A stretch of 13,998 nucleotides of DNA from Anthoceros angustus (taxonomy: Eukaryota; Plantae; Anthocerotophyta). Shown piece by piece: positions 1 to 13,998 of this stretch. Made by a program: the position numbers and the translations under genes. The notes beneath the pieces are model-generated. The model made no database searches. It had not been told where the DNA came from and saw nothing but the letters and a program-made list of their open reading frames with translations. Numbering within the stretch: position 1 is the stretch's first letter; the number at the start of each line of letters is the position of its first letter. The stretch lies in NCBI GenBank assembly GCA_010909165.1, contig VJWM01000414.1, forward strand, positions 1 through 13,998, read 5' to 3'.

Positions 1-1171
1 ACTTCAAAATCACAAGCAGCGTACAGGGCGAGGGCGGGAAGTTGGGGCGGGCGACCCTGGAAAGCAGTGGAGCGGAGCGAAGTACGAGGAGAGCTGGCTA
101 GATGCCCTGTCCCACTCCACTGCAGTATATTCACTCCGGCCCCGCTGAAAGGAGCTCAAATCAAAAGCGGTGGGAAGGAAATCAACCCAAAAGCGCTAGG
201 AAAGGAAGGAATGAGGAAGAAAAACAAATCTGTGATGCAAACCAAACCGGTAGCGAATGTCTGGTCCACAGCCTTCCCGAGCTGCTGCAAGAAAGGCGGC
301 ACTGCAGTGCAAGTAAGCAAGCAGCATCGGTACGAAGAAAGATGTGACATTATTTACAACTAAACTGGCCAGCAGCAAGCCAGACTAGAGAGGACGGTGG
401 TGCAGCTGGGTTGAATCTTCTGGCAACGTGAAAGCAGGACACATGGTTGGTCGGTTGCCTCTGCTTCCATTCCACCTCCCAGCCTGCCTTGCTTGTCATC
501 CGTTTAGCAGGGCCAGCCACTTGTCGCCTGCCGCTGAGACAAGTTTTGCAAGCTGGATGATGAACCAGGTGGGAATCTAATGGCACCCCGAACCCCAAGA
601 CACACAACGGGCAGCAGGCAGGTGTGTGGTGTTGGTGTGCGCAAGGCTCTAGATCAAGCGTCCCATCTCTCATGCCATCCTTAATCTTGCAAGACGCCTC
701 CCTTGTTTGGCTCCAGGGAAACGGACACATGGGTGGTTGCAATCCTCTCTCTCCTTCTCATCTCCTCTCTCCATGGCAGCCCTACAATCACCATGCCACG
801 CACTTGGCACCATTGCTGGCCTGCCGCTCTCATGTCGATAAAGAAATAACCCATATCGTCCGCCTGACGTGTGTGTCCTCGACTACTCCTCCCACCTACA
901 TCACCTACTGCACCCGGCGCGCTCGACCTCCCCTCCCGCATCTGCCACGCTCGGCCGTGCTTTCTGCGAACCGGCGGTCACTCTTAGGCGAGGACCAGGA
1001 ATCCTCCCACCCAGAACGGCCTCCTGGCGCACCGCACGGCCAGCCACTGTATGTAGCGAGCCGCGTTTCTCCTCATGCATGTGTGTGTGTCTCATGTTCC
1101 TTTGCCATCGATCTCGCCAAAGGAACGCGGTAGGTATACATCGTGGATACGGCTCGGCCTGGAAGATACGT

Positions 1172-1800
1172 AGATATTTTCCGATATATGTTCATATGTA
1201 GAATCCAGGTGACCGGGCCAGCCGGTGTCCGGGCCCACCACCGGCGTGCACGGTTAGGTTGACTGGAGGGAGGTCAGGGTGGCGACCACGTGGCCAGTCG
1301 GTGGCCCAATTCTTCGACGGCGCCTCGCGCGACCTGCTCGCCCACTCGCAGAGCTCGTTTGTACCGGACCTTAGGCCGCGCCTTCTCAGCCATTCATTTC
1401 TCACGTTCCTCGCTCCTAATAACGAGCGCGTTTTTAGGCGGCGTTTAAGTTGGAGTAATAAATGTGCATGTTATGGAATATTCGCGGCCTCAGATATTAA
1501 GGTGCCAAAACGACAAAATGGAGAAGGAGGAGAAGGAGAAGTGTATTATAGTCCACCGAGGAGGCGGTTAGACACATTCCTGCTGGAGGTCGGGAACTGT
1601 GTGTAGGTAACTAGACTAGACTAGGTACACATATCTCGCAGCACCGGAAGACCTCGAGGCTGGCCGACGAAAATATCCGAGCTGGGGCTCCGTGACCGGC
1701 GGGTCCGGTGGGGCTGGTGCCGCCTCCGCCACGTGCCGGTGGCGGCCGAAATATCCACAGCCAAGCCTGCCGCTTTCTACCTCATGTCGGAGATAAGGTT
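1172..1800 (+). promoter_or_regulatory. Putative light/circadian/sugar-responsive promoter region upstream of the beta-amylase gene
   Basis: Evening element AAAATATCT on - at 1172-1180; G-boxes CACGTG at 1287-1292 and 1730-1735; evening-element-like AAAATATCC at 1670-1678 and GAAATATCC at 1748-1756 (contains TATCCA, 1752-1757); I-box GATAAG at 1792-1797. These are motif matches only, with no TSS evidence. Confidence 0.45.
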
Positions 1801-3056
1801 GACGCCTTTGGCTGTTGCCGTTTTACCTCACCGCATGCGCGTCCTTGACGAATGGGACGCCGGCTACCGGAAGCAGGCGGTGGGTTTTGGGAGCGCGCGC
1901 TTACCGGCTATGGCGGGGAGGGCCGATCCGGTGCCCCGCGCACGCCGCCTCCGATGCATGGGAGCCTCCTGACAGGTCGACGTGGCGCGCTCATCTCGGA
2001 GGGCGGGCGAATCCGGCGTAACGCGCCGGGCGGTTTCGCCGCCCTTTTCTAGTGGATTTGTTGAATTACCGCCAGCCGCATGTCTATCTGTTGCTGCGTC
2101 CAACGCCGTTGCTGCTGCTGCATTTGCCGCTGCCGCTGGCTGCCTCCGAGCTCTGCTGATCGCATCGTCCTGTTGCGGAGGGAAATTCTGGCCTTCTTCC
2201 TCGGCTGCCTGCTGAATTTGGCGGAGCGTGAGGATTCCAGGCGCCTGGGCAAGAGTTGCAGGATTGTGGCTCCAGTTTGCCAGACAGGGCAGGTGTGTGG
2301 AGTGGAGGAGTGGAGGAGTGAGAGGAGTGGGGTAGAGTTCAGTGAAGTGGAGCATGTAGGCTGGCTGTAGTTGTGACTTGAGCTAAACCTTGGGAGACAC
2401 CGACCCTGCTCCTGCCTGCGACGCGTGTGTGTGTGCTCCGGCTTCTTTCTGTCCGTCTTGGTGAAAAGAGGACGCGAGCCTTGCACTTTATGCCGCGGCA
2501 GTGAGGAGGAGGCCTGTGGTCTGGTTGCGAGATTGGTAGATCGTGAGCCCGGCGGATCCTTTGTGATGTAGTGTGCGCACGCTGGTGTTGGCGAATGACA
2601 AGGAACGCACTGTTGTAGCATCTTACTGTAGTGGAATTGCTGTAGCGGCTTTGGCGGGCCTCGTTCGGGAGCTTGATGTTCTCGAGATCAGGATGGAACA
2701 CCTGGAATTATTGCCTTAAGGAGGTAGGACACATCGGGGACGTAGCACAGATTGCAAGATAGCGCTGATTGGAAGTAAGGACGGATTGGGGAATCGGCCC
2801 ACTGTCGACGGCATGATGCCTGCAGGTGCTAACAGTGGATCCCAGTGGTGGACGGGGTGAGTGCACTGTGTTGAGTGAGGGGTGGTGCACTCTAGATGGT
2901 GGACATGTGTGTCAGGTGTTGACAAGAGCCGGTTGCTTTGCGGCAGTGTTTGGTCGGAGTGCTCCTCCTCATGCGGCGGACGTGGTAGCTAGCTGCTACC
3001 ACCCGGTTCGGCCTCGGGGCTCGGCAGCTTCAGCGGGAAGCCGCATCCCTCTGACG

Positions 3057-6000
3057 ATGCTTGGCTGCTCGGGCAGGTTGTGCAACCAATTATTTTGCAT
3101 GGACAGTGCAGCCAGGATTTGGAGCACCCGGCGCACAACCACGCACCCTTGTGGCCGGGGATGAGATGTTGTCCACCGAACTTGCGGTATCCAGGTCTAT
3201 GAGCTTGCCGGAGTTGTCTGGTAAGGGAAAGAGGAGGGTGAAGAGAGAGCTTGGGAGGGTTGGATTTGCCACTGGAACTGGACACCGGCTGTGCGCCGGG
3301 CATCAGTCTTTCAGGGCCAAAGGAGATGTTGGCCGTCGTGGGAGGACAGCCACTAGCTGCTTTACCGACCAAATGTCCAGGTGGGCGAGTCTCCGCTCTT
3401 ACCAAACTTGCACGTGACGCTTCCCTTTCCCGGAGGATGACCTATGATCTGGTCTGGAGTCTTGGTAGTCTGTGAATTGTGCTCTACTGCCTGCGCGCAC
3501 TGATGCCCAGGATGAAAGTTATTTAGACTCCCATCATTTCCTGGCGGAATGGGATGAAGTTGCAAGCTTCCAGCTTCTGGTGAGGCTTATTATCTTTTCT
3601 CTTGTCTTCGCTTGCAGCGGGCATTCAGGCCCTCGTGCCGAAGCTGCCAGTTCCTCACTGGAGTGCAGCACATCGGGAGAGTTTCGGGTTCCTGTTTTGT
3701 GATGATGCCTCTGGATACCGTTGCTGTTGGTGAAAAGGCGAAGCTGAAAAGGTATTGCTCCCGAATGCCCCTCAGCTGTGAGGAGGTCAGTTTTCCAGGC
3801 ATTGCGTCAGGTCGGTGCTGAGACTCTCATGTCTCTTCCTGTGCAGAATCAGGAGCCTGAATGTAGCTCTTCGTGCACTCAAGCTGGCTGGTGTGGATGG
3901 CGTGATGGTCGATGTGTGGTGGGGGTTGTGGAGCGAAGTCGCCACTTGTTTATGATTGGAAGGTGTATGAAGAACTGTTCAGAATGGTTGCAGAGGCAGG
4001 CTTAAAACTGCAAGTTGTGCTGTCCTTTCATGCCTGTGCGGAGCGTACGTTGGAACTAGGCAGCTGTATAGATCTACCACTTTGGGTGGCAGAGGTGACC
4101 CCTCAAGTCTTTAAAGTTTTGGCTACCGTAGCACATTCAACATGCTTTTGCATTCGTGAAGCTGTTTGTTCCGGATGTGGGTGTGCTGTTTCATCAAGCA
4201 AACATGTCACCATTTTGTCTAGCCAGCATGTTACTCCTTGCAAATAAATGGTCTGCATTCCATATATTGCGTTTTGTCCATGCAGGGACTGATAGCAAGT
4301 TGTGTGTCATGTATTCAGATTGGTCGTTTTGACAAAAATATCTACTACACTGACCGCCGTGGGTTTTGCAACACTGAGTATCTATCAGTTGGAGTGGACA
4401 ATCAGCCTTTGTTTTATGGGCGGACTGCTCTAGACTGTTATGAAGATTTCATGCGGAGCTTCATGGAAACATTTCGTCCACTTTTGGGAGACGTTATCCG
4501 GGAAATTACAATTGGTCTTGGACCTTCAGGCGAGCTTAGGTGAGTGACGGGTAGTGCACGTTGTCAGGGTTCAACTTCCCCGCCCGCCCCTCCCACTGTG
4601 TGCACCGTTGTTTGCTTTGGCTAACTATGTGGTGGTCGACTAGGTATCCGTCCTACCCAATGGCTGATGGGCGCTGGAGGTTTCCAGGCATCGGGGGAGT
4701 TCCAGTGCTACGATAAGTATATGTAAGCCCATTTTTCCTCCTTTTGGCGAAGTGTATAAGCAGCATCTTTGTTCTTTGCTCAAGACTTGTCGTTGTCTTC
4801 GTCGTTTACTTAACTCGCTATTTCTGGCATCAGGTTGGCTGATTTAAGGGCGGCTGCACTAGATATAGGAGAGCCTCGCTGGGGTTTGTCAGGACCACAT
4901 GATGCAGGTCATTACAATAGCTCTCCGTGGGAGGCCCTGTTTTTCCAGCTCCAAGTTGGCACTTTTGCATCGGATTATGGACGTTTCTTCTTGGTAATTG
5001 CATTTCTGTCTGGATTCAAGTCCGTGCCATCCCTTGCTTCCATGGATTTGTGAGCCCCAAAGTATAGATATGTACGACATGATGGTGGAAGCTAACCAGG
5101 GCCAGTTCCGGGGTGTTTTCTACTGCAGGAATGGTACAGTGGCATGCTCATTGATCATGCAGACCAAATTCTGGGCCGAGCAGCTGATATGTTGGAGCAA
5201 AATGGCAAGTCTGGAGTAGTACATTTGGGTGCCAAAGTTGCAGGGGTACACTGGTGGTACCGGTCACACTCTCATGCTGCCGAATTGACAGCTGGGTATT
5301 ACAACACATCTTACAGAGATGGATATGCCCCAATAGAAGTGTTTGCCCGTCATGGAGTCGCGTTGAACTTCCCGTAAGCACTAGGTCTTCTTGGTCATCA
5401 TTTTCTTCATGGATGAGCAGATGTCAGCTGCGTGGAAAATGTGGAGCATGTGGCCAGTGAATCTCACATTGATTGAATGATCTGTGCAGGTGCGTGGAGA
5501 TGCTTGACAGCGAACATCCCGAGCGTTATTGTAGCCCGGAAGGTCTTCTTGCACAGGTACCCACAATTGCCTTTTGCTTGTCCAGAGACGCTGAGGTGGT
5601 TCTTTCCGCGTCGTGAAGCAAAACCACCTCAACTTTCTAGCCTCCCTTCAAGCTGCCCCTGTCTAACTTTGTTACAACTCTCAAAATTTCAGATGCAGCA
5701 CGTGGCACAGCATGCGAATATTCCTATCACTGGGGAGAATGCAATTCAACGCTTTGATGAGGTACAGTTTCGCATTTCATTTGCCAATACATACAGCTTT
5801 GTCGACGTAACACGCACTTAGCAGTAAGATCCTGCCAGCTAATTGGCACTTTCGCCGGTTGCAGGCAGCATTCGATAGGATTGTTAGGAACACGCACAAT
5901 TGGCGCAGCATGCAAACCTTACATTCTTGAGAATGGGAGTCATTATTTACCACCAACAACTGGAGGAGCTTTGTTCGCTTTATCAAGCACATGTGTTCTG

Positions 6001-6179
6001 GAAGCAACCCAGACGTAAGCCGAATGCACAATGTGGCGATCTTTGCAAGTCTTTCTGACAAAAGGGGTGAATCCCCATTTTCAAGTCTAGCTATGAAGGT
6101 CCCCGTCTTGTACTCTATCTGCATTGATTTAAGGAGGAGTTGCTCCCAGTATGTTTTCCTCTATGATCTAGCCTACTGA
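3057..6179 (+). CDS. BAM4: Beta-amylase (glycoside hydrolase family 14), BAM4-like clade, multi-exon, probably plastid-targeted; contains apparent indel errors
   Basis: Exons read by hand with GT/AG boundaries: about 3057-3380 (N-terminus, least certain), 3618-3751, 3847-4094, 4319-4539, 4644-4722, 4834-4993, 5129-5373, 5490-5556, 5693-5761, 5865-6179. After indel correction the peptides are VPVFVMMPLDTV, ALRALKLAGVDGVMVDVWWGVVER, LKLQVVLSFH, GRTALDCYEDFM, IGLGPSGELRYPSYP, WRFPGIGEFQCYDKY, DYGRFFLEWYSG, HAAELTAGYYNT, LNFPCVEM, CSPEGLL, ITGENAIQRFDE and FTFLRM..NNWRSFVRFIKHM. These are GH14 hallmarks. ALKLAGV, QCYEDFM-like and the N-x-P-C motif match my recollection of Arabidopsis BAM4. Splice phases are consistent at every junction. 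Frameshifts at 3695-3698, 3939, 4693-4697, 5919-5920 and about 5936-5939. Confidence 0.9.
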
Positions 6180-6349
6180 AAGCCTGCAGGCTAGTCCACC
6201 TGATACTGTACTTCCTGGTGTCTCTACATTTTCTGTCAACAAGTTGTAGGCTAGAGACAGGCCAGTTCAGTAAATTTGTCGAAACATATTGTATATAATT
6301 GTGAGATGTAGACCTTTCTTTGTGACTTGAATTTCTCTAGGCTTCGTCA

Positions 6350-9300
6350 GCCGCTGAGGATACAAGCCAGAACTCGAGTTGTTGCACAGTGGCTTCTAGA
6401 TCGCGTAAACTTTCCTCTCGTGGCCTCCGTTGCCTCGTCTTGTGACTCTTGTCGACGCCTCTGCCTTCTTCCTCTCTTTCAAACTCAGCAATCTCGGTTT
6501 GGGCGTACTTCATCAGCTTTCATCGGTGCCAAGCACTCCGTCACTCCATTCATCTTGCTGAGCTGTTCCTATGCCGCCACGTTTTACCTCCAGAGACTGT
6601 AATTTGTCAAGCAGGCACTCTCTCTTCTTATGCTGTTCTTTCTGAACTGCTCGAACTTCTCGTGACGTCATCGTCGCACAATCTGACCCCAGGTCAATGC
6701 ACAGCTGCCTTGCTTACAACCCAAAATACATCCGTCACTCGTTGAATGACCCTTAGGACTCTGCAGTAGTACTGTATTTGAGGTTTTAGCTGTGTGAACA
6801 CAAACAGCTTAGGTATGGTGTACTGCCTAGCAGAAGCGTATGCCTGGAACAAAACCAGGAAAACGTTCATGTCTCACGCCTCGCTTTGATGCATTTATGC
6901 ATGGACAGCTCTCGAAGATAGCAAAAAGTAAGTCAGAGAAAGGGACCCACTTGTGTCATGAAAAGCTTTTCTCCAGCTCGTCTTGCTCCCTTCATTTGCT
7001 TTGCTATGCGCTGAAGTTCAGGTGCCTCTCAACCTTGATTACCACAAACCTTCTCCTGCTTCGAGGTGCAGAGTTGATTATAGGTTGGAATGTGCATTCT
7101 CGGACTTCCTGCAACTCCTTCAATACCCTCGCGAGCCTCTGCCTCCTGGCTTTCTCCTGATAAACGATGGGGTAAATGTGAGTCTGTATACCTGACTCCT
7201 TTGACTGAGTTATTCAATTTTTCACCGGCCGCAACTGAGAACAGAGGCATGCCTCTCTGTGGCAATGTCGTCGCAGACGAACCATCTCCATGGTTTTCCT
7301 GTCTTTGATAACCCGCAGAGACGTAGGATTCATCTACGAGGGATGCACATGTGAGCTACACAGCACAGATGCACCTCTGCACAAGTTCCACGTCGAGGAC
7401 AGCACATACATTCATGCTTCTCCGTCTGGTGGAAGTAGGGGGCTGCGAACCTGAGGTTGGAATGAGACTTTTCATCGAAAGCTGCTTTTGCAGCTAACAT
7501 CAATCCTGCTTTCTTCCTTGTGGCTTTTCATTCTGCAACCATTGCCCAAAACTGCATGTCATCCACTTCTACAATATTGAAATGACTGATTCAACTCTCT
7601 CTCCGTGACTACATGCAAGAAACAGGATTCAAGTAGGATACAAAAGCCTTGACGCATGGCCCAAAACATACCTTGTGCAGCAAGTCAATGCTAGGTTGTC
7701 TCCTAAGGGTCGAGAGACCTCGTCAATCTCTGGACGATATTTGAACTTTGAATCCACAGCATCCTGCTTGTAACCAGAAGCACATCAAAACTCCTCGAAT
7801 GAGAAAAAGCACTTTTCAACAACTTTGTGCATGCAAGTATCAGCACGATCAATCTCCACCACCTTCAACACAATTTTCTATGATACTCTGTTCTCTCGGT
7901 TTCTGCACTCATTGCCTGCAACATCGCCCGTAAATATACATGCATCTAAGCACAGGTGGCAAAGAAATGCATATGCCCTTGCCCTGATGTCCTTGCTCTG
8001 ACCTAGAAGTGAAATGAAACCTGGTGACAAACAAACACCCAGCAAAAGTACGGATCTCACAGCTATTGTCTGCAGGTGTTGGTCATGGTTTTCATATCAC
8101 GAACAGACAGCCTTTCCCACCTTTGAGTGGGACCTTCTCCCATCATATGTAGATGATTTGTTGATTTTCTGAGAATAGCATCACAATCACTTATTTTTGG
8201 AGTGAAGGTTGCATCTATGGGAATCTGTTCCTTTTCCTTCACCTTCTGTTTGCCCATGTGTCCAAACAAGTTACTCGTGTATGAGGAGACAGCTGAGGTT
8301 CTTATGCTCTTGAGAGACTACAGAAGTTCATTCACTTAGGGTTCCTAATCAGCTGACCTACCTTGTCATGACTCTCTACAAATCTTCGCTGCCGAGAAAA
8401 GAAATCTGGGCAAGAGCCATACTCATAGATTTCCCAACAATTTCGTTCGTGTTCTTGTTGATAACTGGGGCAAATGTGCATTGATATTTCCCATTCGTAT
8501 AACATTCTGATGTACAGAATCAAAGCAAATTTGGTACTACGCGCAATACTAGAGGTGAGAAAGTGATGAGGAGGACACTTACCCCTTTGTGGCTTTTGCA
8601 CTCTTCATACAGAAGGCCGTACATCTCGTAAAGACGATCTTGGAAGGTTATGTGCCGATACCCTCGCTGCGGTATTACAAGGGACCGCCATACAATGCAG
8701 CCAAGATCAGAGCAAGAACCTATTCCTGATAGGCCTCGAGGCTCTAATGTTGTTACAACCGGAGCATCCCGGACCACCAATGGTCAGCCGAGTGTTTGAA
8801 GCTTCCACACAGCACAAACCTGCTTAAACAGTCGAATTGATCTTCAGTTGATCTGAGGGCCGGTACACCCAGCTGCAATGTCAGTTCTTTTCCTCATGAG
8901 CTCCAGTCGTTCCATTCTCCTTGGCTAAGTGAGATTCACAGCTTGCTTCAGTCGATGGTTGATACGAAGGGAGTGAAATTTTATTTTAGTTTAGTCCAAG
9001 AGAAGTTGGGACCTGCCAGTCCTCTGTTCGCTCGTGTATAGGTTGGTAAGGGACATGATCATACTCCGTGTTTGTTTGTGGCCAGAATGAGGCATGTCCA
9101 TTGCCTCTTTCTCGTTTACCATTCTAGCCTGCAAGATGCAGACTCCTTTCAGTCAATGGAAGACAACAATGTCCAAAGCGCATGTCTCGGTATACATGCA
9201 CAATAAACAACAACTTTCTTACTCGTTTTCTTTCTTCCATGCGCTTTTGCAAGTTTCCAGCCCTCTCCAGCATTGGCCTGGGACTTCCTATTCCCCTCTG

Positions 9301-11650
9301 TAGTCATTAACAATTTTGTTCTGGGGTGGAGGCGATCAATTATGTACTTTGCCACCGTAAAACATGAAGTGGCTTATAGGTGAAGAAGGACAGAGCTCAC
9401 ACAGTGAATTACCTTGAAGGAGCATTCATTCAGAAATTCTTGGTTGTCCAAAGCTTCCTTCAGCTGGGCAAACTTTTTGTACAAATCAGTTCTAGGAGTT
9501 GCTAGATACTTAATCCTCTCCTGCGCATTGGACCGGTGTGAGCCTTCAGCCATTTCAGTCTTGACTAAATTCATCAAAATAAGGCAAGGATCATCCACAG
9601 CAGAAAATTCACGAAGGAGAATCCACACCTCTCCACTTAGCCTCCCTGATGACAACTGTTTCATATTTCTTGTACCCAGGACCCTGCATATTCCACGTAT
9701 TGAGCAGTTAACCTTGGGTGCAACATCCATATAAAATAGGAATGACACAAAGGACCCTTCAACGTGCAACTACCATGATCCACTCTTTGGTACGCTTCTC
9801 GCGTCGGTCTCCATTAAATTGCCGCTTACGAGCAACATGTATCTTACAGGTGCATCTCAAGGGGTTGGGCTCCCCATCTCCATGTCCACTGTGCAGGTTG
9901 CAAATTCATCTCTGTATGCATGTAAGCCAGTCATGGGTGACCGAAGATATGCTGGAACACTAAAGGGTAAGAATATAGAACTTGCATACGTGGGGTCTAG
10001 TGGTTTCCATGTCCCAAAGCCTTTTGGTCATCATCACCATCCCCAACGTCACCTTTGCCACCACTATCATCATCACCTCCGTCACCACCACCACCTCCTC
10101 CCCACAACCAACTCCTCCTCCACAACTGACTCCTCCCCAACCATTCACCTCCATCTTTCTCTGCTTGGCTGTCACTACCTATGCAGGATTTCCACGTTGC
10201 AGAAGCTGTCCGGCCTATCACTGTAGAGAATGACATACAAGTGGTCTCTGATTGCTGATGCTTGTCCATGTGATACTCTTTGGCCAAATGAAATTCCACA
10301 CCATCCTTCACAAGTCACAGGAAACACCCAACTCAGGCTTTCTTGCAACACAAAAGTGCAGTAAGCTGCTTGGACTGAACTCTGAGTAACGTACCTTGAC
10401 AGCTTTCAGAGCACTCTTCTCAGATGTCCATCTGACATCCAGGGTTCTGTCCTGCGGTCACTGCTCTTTGTGATGAAACTCCTGCTCAGGATGAACCGTC
10501 CAGGGTCCAGTCATCGGAACTACTTGAGTCTTCCGCACCTGGAACTCCACAGAAGGGTAGACATGACACTCTCTTCCCTAATGTTCCTTTCTTGGTTGCC
10601 ATGTTAATGATGTCCAAAGTGGTGCTTTGGCTCGTGATCTCCCAGGCATTGGAAAATTCTGCAGAGTAATTCCACCAATCCTTGAGCTAGAATTACTTGA
10701 GGTTTCAAAGTCTCCTCCCTCCGGTGCTCTCCTCCGTGGCGATCCCCGAAACAGGACGGACCAGAGCCAAAAGTTAGCAACCTTGAGGCTTCGATCCTTG
10801 CCTTTAGGGCTACACTGGAATGACAGGAAGTGTGACTTAGTGACACTGATGTCCTCATTCTCCACCAGGATTGTCTTTATGGTCAACAACCTAACACCAC
10901 TCCTTGGGCAGGTAACTTCATCCTTCAAGCAAACTCCTCTGCCTTTCTTGGAGGTCTGGCTAAACCCCATGTTCTTATTCCACTCCACAGTCATCAGGAG
11001 CATGGATGCATGCCCCAGGTTGAACATCAATGTCAACAAGTTGTTTGGCTTTCTCCATCTTCAATCTGGCAAGGTTTCTCCGTGGCTTCAGGTGTGCAGC
11101 TGTCAAACGTGACAAGCAGGAGACAGGAACCGTCAAAATCCATCAACCATCATCAAACTTGTTAAAAAACCGAACAAGACCGTCATGCTCATCAAATGCC
11201 ATGCCTCACAACTACGTTGCTTTCACTTGTCCTAAAGCACCAAAGAAATGTGGTTTACTGCACAGGCAGCGAAATGAGCTCCTTCAACGCTCACACAGTC
11301 TTCAGCCAGCCAGCCAGCCAGCCAAACGACCAGTGATTTTCCAAACCGCTGGAAAGCTAAGCGGAAGGGCAAGCCGACATACATTTGGCATCCGTGGAGG
11401 AGCCTGGCATGAAAGACAAGGGTTTGCAAGCAAGAAGAGCCTCGCAGCGCCGGATGCTGTCCTCGATTCCACTTCCACTCCTTCATCCTCACCCACATCC
11501 ACAACTTTTCCTTCTTCTTCGATGATTTCTTCGGCATGCTTGTGCCTTGTGCAATACCTGACGCTGGCTCATCAGCTCATGCCCGGGTGCTCCTGATCGC
11601 AGCCCAGACACATCAAGGCCAAGTCTGGAAAACCCAGTACATCCTGTACA
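6350..11650 (-). CDS. Uncharacterised long multi-exon protein: acidic/Gly-rich disordered N-terminus, charged helical segments and about 8 C[TS]FxPxIN-like repeats; ends approximate, many indels
   Basis: Minus-strand GT donors (for example at 9412, after ECSFK) and coherent peptides: EEIIEEEGKVVDVGEDEGVEVESR (about 11440-11535), GGGGGGDGGDDDSGGKGDVGDGDDD (about 10030-10105), QERIKYLATPRTDLYKKFAQLKEALDNQEFLNECSFK (9413-9520), MLERAGNLQKRMEERKR (about 9220-9275), CTFAPVINKNTNEIV (8457-8480 and beyond), ATFTPKIS (8189-8212), FKYRPEIDEVSR (about 7720-7755), QEKARRQRLARVLKELQEVRECTFQPIIN (7073-7160). No named family recognised. Confidence 0.65.
10028..10150. repeat. CAT/CAC/CTC-rich low-complexity tract, probably coding Gly/Asp-rich peptide on -
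   Basis: Imperfect trinucleotide runs. The minus frame gives GGGGGGDGGDDDSGGKGDVGDGDDD; the plus-strand poly-His/Thr ORFs are shadows of it. Confidence 0.7.
11303..11322. repeat. (CAGC)5 microsatellite, probably intronic
   Basis: cagccagccagccagccagc read directly. Confidence 0.9.
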
Positions 11651-11979
11651 TAAATACAACTCCAACAGACCCAATCTCACGTTTGCCCCTCCTCCAGCTT
11701 TTCCACCCAGGAGATCTTGGAAGTTCGATTGTCCTGGTCACGGGAATCTGCAGTTAAACGTAACTGTCACTGCTGTCGTTTGCAATCAGCTACTTAAAGC
11801 ACCAGTGGAGACCTGATACCATGTTCCCACCCGCCAGACTGGCGGTCGGTCCATTCAACCCAAACTCCACCACCTCGCTCCGCCACAGCAGAATCGCCTC
11901 CAAGAACCAACAGTGGCCAGTGGTATCAGTGAACGTTTTGGGTTCCTGCTTTCCCGTCTGGAGAAAGCGGGTGAGCAGG

Positions 11980-12519
11980 ATGATTGCTCAGGCTGCATTC
12001 GCGCCCCGGCACCTGCCGTGAGCAGCACCAGTTCCCGGATGCTGCTGCAGCCGCTGCAGCTTCAACCCAGTACGTCTTCCCCATTACGATAAGCTAAGAT
12101 CCGTTCAGGCTGCGTGTTCTCGTGCTTAAAGAAGGAGGATCAGTGTTTGTTTGTGCAGCAAGCAGCTGCGGGCATTCGCACAACAGCAACCAGCTCCAGC
12201 TCTCAGGACTTGTCGAAACTGCAAACGACAATACGACCCTTCGGAAAACCACCCAAGTGCTTGCCAGTATCATCCTGCACATTTTGGGTAACTGCAAGAC
12301 ATGCCTATGAGTTGCAGGTGTTCAGAGGACGATTTCCTATCCTCCTCTTGTTGCCTGTGTTCAGGTGAAACCAAACGGAAGTTTGAAAGCGTGTATTCAG
12401 GAGGCACCATGGACACTCCGGGCTCCGGTCAGATAGTTCAGTACTGGCACTGTTGTGGGAGCAAAGATACCTTCAGTGTTGGCTGCCAAACATCCCCACA
12501 TATCTCATACGATGACTAG
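11980..12519 (+). CDS. Small conserved plant protein with a single CHORD-like Cys/His (putative Zn-binding) domain; probable N-terminal transit peptide
   Basis: Exons about 11980-12069 (start uncertain), 12159-12287 and 12365-12519 give LRTCRNCKRQYDPSENHPSACQYHPAHFG(G)ETKRKFESVYSGGTMDTPGSGQIVQYWHCCGSKDTFSVGCQTSPHISYDD*. I recall this C-terminal sequence as conserved in uncharacterised land-plant proteins. The G run at 12286-12288 appears 2 nt short for in-frame splicing. Confidence 0.8.
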
Positions 12520-12974
12520 TTGGCGATTGCAGCTCTAGCTCTTCCTGTTGGGTTGGTTTTGGAGCACTTATTTTCTCCGACTGAGCTTACAACCTAATCC
12601 CACATTATGTAAGGTTCTTTGAAGAATTGTATTTTTTGCTCAGGTGGGAAAAATGGACTATCTTTATTAACAACAAAACCCTCGCACCTAAGCGGAACCG
12701 AAAGAAGCTTCGTCTAGACGTCGGTCCATGTACAAGCACGCCGATAGGATAAGGGCGGCTTTCCATGGACATCAATTTCCCTCCAGCAACTTCAGCCAGC
12801 CCAAAATGAAACTTCACGACAAAAAGCCAGCAGGAACAGGGAAGTTGATGTGAACTCCCCTAATGATCGAAAGAGACCGCCTCTAGCGAAATTGGCAAGA
12901 GCTCTTTGGGCAGGAACCTATGCGGCAAGGCCTACGGGCCTTTCTTGGTAGAGTGTAGGGGCTTCCTTCTTCTC

Positions 12975-13001
12975 GCTTGCAATCCCTAGAGGATTGCAAG
13001 C
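12975..13001. repeat. Perfect inverted repeat (11-bp stem, 5-nt loop)
   Basis: GCTTGCAATCC-CTAGA-GGATTGCAAGC read directly. Confidence 0.85.
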
Positions 13002-13151
13002 TTCCATTACGATGTCTCGGTTCGTGTGTGTTTGCCATACCATGCACGCATTAGTCGATTTTGGGCACGGTCGATGGGTCGGAAGGCGCAAGTCTCAAAC
13101 CTCCTGCGACTTCAACCTTCGTTCTTAATTGTCCCTGGCTCATCCTTGCCT

Positions 13152-13516
13152 TTAGCTTTGTTGCGGAATTTGGTAGCTTCCATGCTTCCCCAATCTCACA
13201 ACTTGGTGTGGGCCACATGCACTTTCGAGCACCGACCACGTTCCTCCATGAACATTAAAGGCACCTCGAAGTTGTGGACCCCGCAGAACTTCATATCTTG
13301 CCGCAAGAAGATAAACCCGACTCGACTCTTGGGTGGCGGCAAGGAGAAAAATAAGAGGCCATCGCGATGGGAAGAGGTGGTCACATTGCAAGGCTAGCGT
13401 GTAATGTGCCGCACCCGAAGCAAATGGGATAGGTGTAATGTGCACGACCGATAGCCAGCAAGCAAATGGGACGGTTGTCTGGGACTTGAAAAAATCAATG
13501 ATCATTGCGGCATCCA
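13152..13516 (-). CDS. Possible plant exon of an unidentified gene, downstream of a 118-nt intron (13634-13517)
   Basis: A GTAAGT donor at 13634, an AT-rich intron body and a TTAG acceptor at 13518-13517 lead into a reading frame open for about 121 codons (VDAAMIIDFFKSQTTVPF...). No family recognised. Confidence 0.3.
13399..13471. repeat. Degenerate two-copy direct repeat
   Basis: GTGTAATGTGC(13399)-8nt-AAGCAAATGGGA(13418) followed by GTGTAATGTGC(13433)-16nt-AAGCAAATGGGA(13460). Confidence 0.8.
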
Positions 13517-13634
13517 CTAAGTGGTCGGGACACATATAAGAAAAACATTATGGCTTTAATTACATATGATACAACATTGCTTTATTAGAACTTGAAAACA
13601 AAGGAAACAAAGAACCATCAAGTAAGCAACTTAC

Positions 13635-13998
13635 CATCCGCGTTTGTGACCGCAGCCCGCCGACCGTACTGGCGTTCAGCAGCACGCTCACCGTGTTCCC
13701 GCCGGTGTTGGTGACGGCCACGTCCGGCTTGCCGTCGCCGTTGAAGTCGCCCACCGCCAGGCCGGTCGGGCCGAGGCCGACGCCCAGGGTGAGCAGGCCG
13801 CCGCAGGTGCCGTCCCCGTTCCTGCGGAACACGGACAGCGAGCCGGTCAGCCCGAGCAGGTTGTTCACCGTCGCCACGTCCACCTTGCCGTCGGTCGGCC
13901 AGGGCGACGAACGGGTTGCGCGGCGGTCAGGGTGCCGGGGGATGAGGCGGGAACGTCACGGGCTTCCAGCGACTCCAGCCGCAGGTTGGTTCGGTGCC
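13635..13998 (-). CDS. Fragment of a bacterial (planctomycete-type) secreted FG-GAP/VCBS-repeat protein; start lies just outside the window
   Basis: Reads (R)HRTNLRLESLEARDVPA (motif at 13984-13946) and then, after an indel, DGKVDVATVNN..GSLSVFRRNGDGTC and PTGLAVGDFNGDGKPDVAVTNTGGNTVSVLLN, which are canonical FG-GAP/VCBS repeats. GC is 72% (13681-13740) and 77% (13741-13800), with almost all third codon positions G/C. Confidence 0.88.

Follow-up and report, generated by a model that had tools for sequence, protein, structure and literature searches.

A planctomycete-type FG-GAP/VCBS gene fragment at the end of an Anthoceros angustus contig is probably a chimeric contig end

The window analysed here, the whole 13,998-nucleotide stretch of contig VJWM01000414.1 from the hornwort Anthoceros angustus, has a body of plant nuclear DNA and ends in a fragment of a bacterial gene (positions 13653–13998, minus strand), which encodes an export motif of the planctomycete type and, after it, FG-GAP/VCBS repeats. 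Taking all lines of evidence together, this tail is probably a chimeric contig end derived from a co-sequenced bacterium, and the join between the two parts appears to be technical. The strong point against a real join is that environmental copies of the tail continue differently at the junction.

The plant body of the window is identified by a plant-type GH14 beta-amylase gene on the plus strand (3939–5371), the exons of which match the GH14 profile in order. The matching segments (3939–4094, 4331–4540, 4639–4698, 4859–4993 and 5129–5371) correspond to profile positions 46–96, 100–161, 160–178, 201–242 and 243–317, respectively; profile positions 179–200 found no match among the open segments scanned. 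The segments are separated by gaps of about 100–240 nt and contain no frame breaks, so that the gaps read as introns and not as frameshifts. The longest of the exons matches plant beta-amylases at 1e-21 to 1e-17, compared with 1e-5 for bacterial beta-amylases. The presence of an intron-split beta-amylase gene of the plant type shows that the window, apart from its tail, consists of plant nuclear DNA.

The base composition changes abruptly near the end of this DNA. An initial annotation, made from the sequence alone, had described a jump in GC content from 28% to 72–77%, and these figures were reproduced exactly, with 28.3% at 13561–13620, 71.7% at 13681–13740 and 76.7% at 13741–13800. The tail as a whole (13653–13998) has a GC content of 72.3%, compared with 50.4% for positions 1–13639; elsewhere in the window, a 346-nt stretch reaches 68.5% at most. 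Its GC content at third codon positions (GC3) is 96%, against an overall GC content of 48% in the neighbouring plant DNA, which means that no amelioration has occurred and agrees with the unameliorated codon usage that had been claimed. The fragment carries no intron and represents approximately the first 119 codons downstream of a start codon that is absent. The gene is in fact cut at both ends: its 5′ end lies off the window, past position 13998, and its 3′ end falls inside the repeat array. Plant DNA adjoins the foreign stretch on one side only and the foreign stretch reaches the last base of the window; from the odd size of the window, position 13998 would be the end of the contig.

Two in-frame FG-GAP/VCBS repeats are found on the minus strand at 13641–13883, the number given in the initial annotation, and the two Pfam profiles concerned both score above their curated thresholds: FG-GAP_3 (PF13517, formerly VCBS) at 1.7e-12 with 48.2 bits over two stretches (cutoff 26.9), and FG-GAP (PF01839) at 5e-9 with 36.3 bits (cutoff 22.1). 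FG-GAP/VCBS repeats are integrin-alpha-like beta-propeller blades with calcium-binding loops. The tail resembles proteins of this type both in its scores and in its DxNxDGxxD-type loops, since the calcium-loop-like pattern D-x-[ND]-x-D-G-x-x-D occurs as DFNGDGKPD in the window and as DFDRDGKVD once a patch of deletions (described below) has been filled. This patch masks a third repeat upstream of the other two in the window sequence. The tail differs from complete proteins of this type in being a fragment of two to three blades and not a propeller, as the array is cut at 13653 and falls short of a full set of blades. The initial annotation was correct in describing part of a bacterial FG-GAP/VCBS gene that directly adjoins plant DNA.

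Ahead of the repeats, the minus strand encodes a planctomycete-type cell-surface/export motif, presumably N-terminal, HRTNLRLESLEARDVPA (13946–13996). The frame of the motif starts at 13996 and that of the repeats, to which the listed open reading frame (13560–13883) belongs, at 13997; the two thus lie in different frames of the minus strand, as had been pointed out. The motif string originally reported is present in this form except for its leading arginine, which lies outside the window: upstream of the motif there is a single partial codon (to 13998), of which two bases are present, and a contig from a soil metagenome (X1, see below) extends 10 bases more. Within the motif, LRLESLEARDVP matches every fixed position of the pattern LxLExLExRxxP. 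This pattern had no occurrence in 12 million random codons with the dinucleotide make-up of the tail, and the motif is therefore not a chance match. The Pfam profile Planc_extracel (PF07595) aligns over positions 5–15 of its 20 and scores 13.6 bits, below its gathering score (cutoff 25.5 bits), because the end of the window, one codon upstream, shortens the motif.

A planctomycete N-terminal motif of the form RRLxxExLExRxLLA (Pfam PF07595, Planc_extracel) was reportedly described by Studholme et al. in 2004. This form occurs in Rhodopirellula baltica, and the motif has been called planctomycete-specific; the LxLExLExRxxP form is present in 52 genes of Tuwongella immobilis, a member of the family Gemmataceae (PMC8567305). 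As in the planctomycete proteins that carry such motifs, the motif in the tail precedes repeat domains of an extracellular type. The tail motif differs from theirs in its score below the Pfam threshold, and the tail also differs in that, among the matches listed, none was a close homologue belonging to a named planctomycete. We surveyed 80 FG-GAP loci from bacterial genomes, a small sample in which the other phyla account for 13 times more DNA, and found an R-rich…LExLExRxLL[AS] motif ahead of long open reading frames at four of the five Planctomycetota loci (61 kb) and at none of the 75 loci from other phyla (787 kb). The loci with the motif (L019, from a Tepidisphaeraceae MAG, L046, L051 and L062) encode giant FG-GAP proteins that begin with it and extend for 1,200–2,300 residues downstream of it. 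At the Gemmataceae locus L057, no such motif was found within the stretch examined.

On the strength of the export motif, the planctomycete origin that had been suggested for the tail can be regarded as well supported, with the donor placed in the Planctomycetota. The proline form of the motif would fit the Gemmataceae as the donor family, which is plausible but unproven: this earlier proposal is consistent with the occurrence of LxLExLExRxxP in T. immobilis (PMC8567305), and no close relative by which the family could be settled was among the matches listed. The FG-GAP part is uninformative in this respect, and we cannot tell the donor from it, its best matches (50–72%, among the matches listed) being spread over many phyla. 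When near relatives were sought with peptide patterns in one genome per species, the best of the matches listed reached 57% identity, and most belonged to Acidobacteriota; in the JGI metagenomes an exact 36-mer had no match and the peptide patterns had one, at 50%. In a word-based protein search (lengths 72–229 amino acids), the best matches aligned to a portion of the query at 51–72%, and none of the fragments was near-identical. In the HMMER search (85,521 representative FG-GAP proteins), the top ranks are taken by giant multi-repeat proteins with 36–56% identity, which swamp the ranking and leave it without taxon information. Atlas look-alikes fall into generic FG-GAP clusters from several phyla and from rotifers, again with no taxon signal.

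Copies of the tail do exist in the environment. Public sequencing runs were searched with positions 13280–13998, and the contigs of four runs (X1–X4, from four studies) were aligned to the window. Part of the bacterial half is carried by 14 runs from 12 studies, which comprise soil, lake-water and sediment metagenomes as well as named organisms. The soil contig X1 (457 nt) covers 13653–13994 with two substitutions and 16 extra bases, and the lake-water contig X2 (315 nt) covers 13698–13994 with substitutions and 16 extra bases identical to those of X1. The sediment contig X3 (151 nt) matches 13660–13810 with one difference, and X4, which is 168 nt long and stems from DNA sequenced for another organism, matches 13653–13763 (111 nt) with none. 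The tail is thus approximately 99% identical to the environmental contigs (two substitutions in 342 bases). In the contigs of all four runs the match ends at or just past 13653 (in X3 it runs from 13660), and directly to the left of this position X1, X2 and X3 continue with a further FG-GAP repeat, while X4 continues with a GC-rich loose end of 30 letters. Positions 13000–13652 are covered in none of the runs X1–X4, in a collection from which a plant's own contigs may be filtered, which leaves this blank with little weight by itself. The plant half of 13280–13998 is present in none of the 18 runs listed, which hold at most the bacterial half, and no RNA run was found with the queried stretch 13280–13998. 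Among the runs X1–X14 with parts of the tail, five named organisms are represented, and two of the runs are presumed to be of RNA.

Alignment to these contigs also accounts for the change of frame from the motif to the repeats, which results from a patch of eight deletions, 16 bases in total, at 13891–13945; the patch is the same whether X1 or X2 is taken as the reference. Five of the sites lack one base each and the others lack two, three and six bases, mostly within or beside runs of G or C, and the window has no insertion relative to the environmental contigs. Restoring the 16 bases produces a single open frame in which a short linker connects the export motif to three FG-GAP repeats, which implies that the gene is intact in the bacterium and that only the copy in the window is damaged. 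Both substitutions alter an amino acid, and at one of them the environmental RGNGDG is nearer to the repeat consensus than the RRNGDG of the window. The rest of the alignment is clean, over 238 bases before the patch and 49 bases beyond it. Eight deletions against two substitutions, with the deletions packed into 55 bases, resembles a poorly supported long-read consensus and not a decaying gene. Pseudogene decay in the plant was considered as the origin of the frame shift and rejected, the damage consisting of deletions only and lying within one patch. A window riddled with errors throughout was rejected as well, the beta-amylase exons being free of damage. The error profile that the initial annotation had invoked for the whole window was not confirmed: the GH14 exons follow one another in order, with gaps of intron size and no frame breaks, and the errors cluster in the tail. 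As the plant gene of the window is undamaged, the damage is special to the tail.

We propose that the sequenced plant material or the library contained DNA of a free-living planctomycete of high GC content, widespread in soil or fresh water. Its gene would encode a predicted cell-surface protein in which the planctomycete-specific N-terminal export motif precedes beta-propeller repeats of the FG-GAP/VCBS type, and some 350 bases of it may have become attached to the end of the plant contig through one chimeric long read or through a mis-join in the assembly. Thin data at the contig end would then have left the 55-base patch of deletion errors and, with it, the broken frame; in the plant the fragment would have no function. 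The clean 238-base middle of the tail counts against this reading, and would mean either that the bacterial reads were sufficient for correction or that the sequence is accurate there. The signs that residence after a horizontal transfer would leave are absent, as there is no amelioration, no intron and no RNA run with the stretch, and the frame is broken. The initial annotation had offered a recent transfer or an artificial join as alternatives. The artificial join is the one that gained, from the bacterial continuation past 13653, the deletion-only patch, the cut at both ends and the terminal position, and no support accrued to the transfer.

It is unlikely in our estimation that a piece of planctomycete DNA was genuinely and very recently inserted into the nuclear genome of the plant, perhaps captured at a double-strand break; such a fragment would have had no function from the outset, and the contig would happen to end within it. 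Bacterial transfers into bryophyte genomes do occur. An AT-rich flank on the plant side (13540–13637; 28.6% GC, no coding signal) is followed, ahead of the point where bacterial homology begins (13653), by 15 GC-rich junction bases (13638–13652) that match neither side: local alignment of these bases to the bacterial continuation was not significant, with 13% of shuffles scoring equally high. None of the sequencing adapters compared was found at the junction, the join is direct, and the 15 unassigned bases could be filler, which non-homologous end joining can leave behind. The eight deletions, too, could in principle be decay, but against two substitutions in a 55-base patch they follow the pattern of errors and not that of decay. 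An identity of about 99% to bacteria found today in soil, lakes and sediment, together with the GC3 of 96%, would moreover make the insertion extremely young, and it would have to be reconciled with plant DNA on one side only and with the lack of an RNA run containing the stretch. The more specific course of events, in which the fragment, still about 99% identical, came from a planctomycete on the plant or in its vicinity and entered the nuclear genome very recently, strikes us as quite improbable. If true, it would capture bacterial DNA just as it enters a plant genome, still untouched by amelioration or selection.

The join may also be technical with the bacterium carried over at the sequencing centre from another sample or from reagents, and not coming from the plant sample, a possibility that we regard as decidedly doubtful. 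It would fit the recovery of the tail, with few or no differences, from soil, lake water, sediment and at least one named organism, as well as the smaller word shares in four more organisms; over 12 studies, this is an unusually wide spread for a gene that is not conserved, at an identity of about 99%. However, a widespread freshwater or soil planctomycete would look the same, and nothing links the runs, the identifiers of which are coded, to one laboratory. The tail would stem from a planctomycete of cosmopolitan distribution or from a passenger that is common in laboratories.

An endogenous plant FG-GAP gene, whether of a eukaryotic family (CRTAC1-like) or from an old and fixed transfer, with a GC content that merely looks foreign, is very improbable and close to refuted: FG-GAP repeats do occur in eukaryotes and rotifer clusters are among the atlas look-alikes, but published work describes the N-terminal motif as specific to planctomycetes, among the 80 FG-GAP loci it is restricted to Planctomycetota, the metagenome contigs continue as GC-rich repeats without a plant flank, and the tail lacks introns and reaches a GC3 of 96% next to plant DNA of 48% GC.

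A chimeric contig end, which we favour, has parallels in the false calls of horizontal transfer that contamination has caused, of which the debate on the tardigrade Hypsibius dujardini is an example. As in calls based on contaminants or chimeric contigs, the bacterial sequence is unameliorated, lies at a presumed contig edge and has the host on one side; the present case differs in that the bacterial stretch is short, at some 350 bases, and in that its damage can be compared with environmental copies. Taken at face value, the join would be reported as a gene transfer from a planctomycete to a plant. Contamination filters that operate on whole contigs or scaffolds have been used for hornwort genomes (PMC8075897), and whole-scaffold filters of this kind would leave a short foreign tail in place. 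On the present evidence, positions 13653–13998 should instead be annotated as a probable chimeric contig end and cut off. More generally, comparison of such a tail with public metagenome contigs, which here reveals the same sequence, another continuation and damage of an error type, provides a quick test that does not call for the original reads.

Some features of the plant side stand apart from the question of the join. Exact-product look-ups of two plant-side open reading frames, and of the one that spans the junction, found nothing on record. Positions 1–3400 have a GC content of 57.7%, locally up to 68%, compared with 48% in the remaining plant part; their ten longest open reading frames had no match in Pfam, the window had none in Rfam, and this region is probably non-coding or repeat DNA. 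Finally, the open reading frame at 9819–10226 on the plus strand contains a histidine-rich low-complexity run, HHHHPQRHLCHHYHHHLRHHHH, the opposite strand encoding a run rich in glycine and aspartate, and the strongest GC skew of the window (−0.64, at 10001–10200) coincides with this histidine-rich frame.
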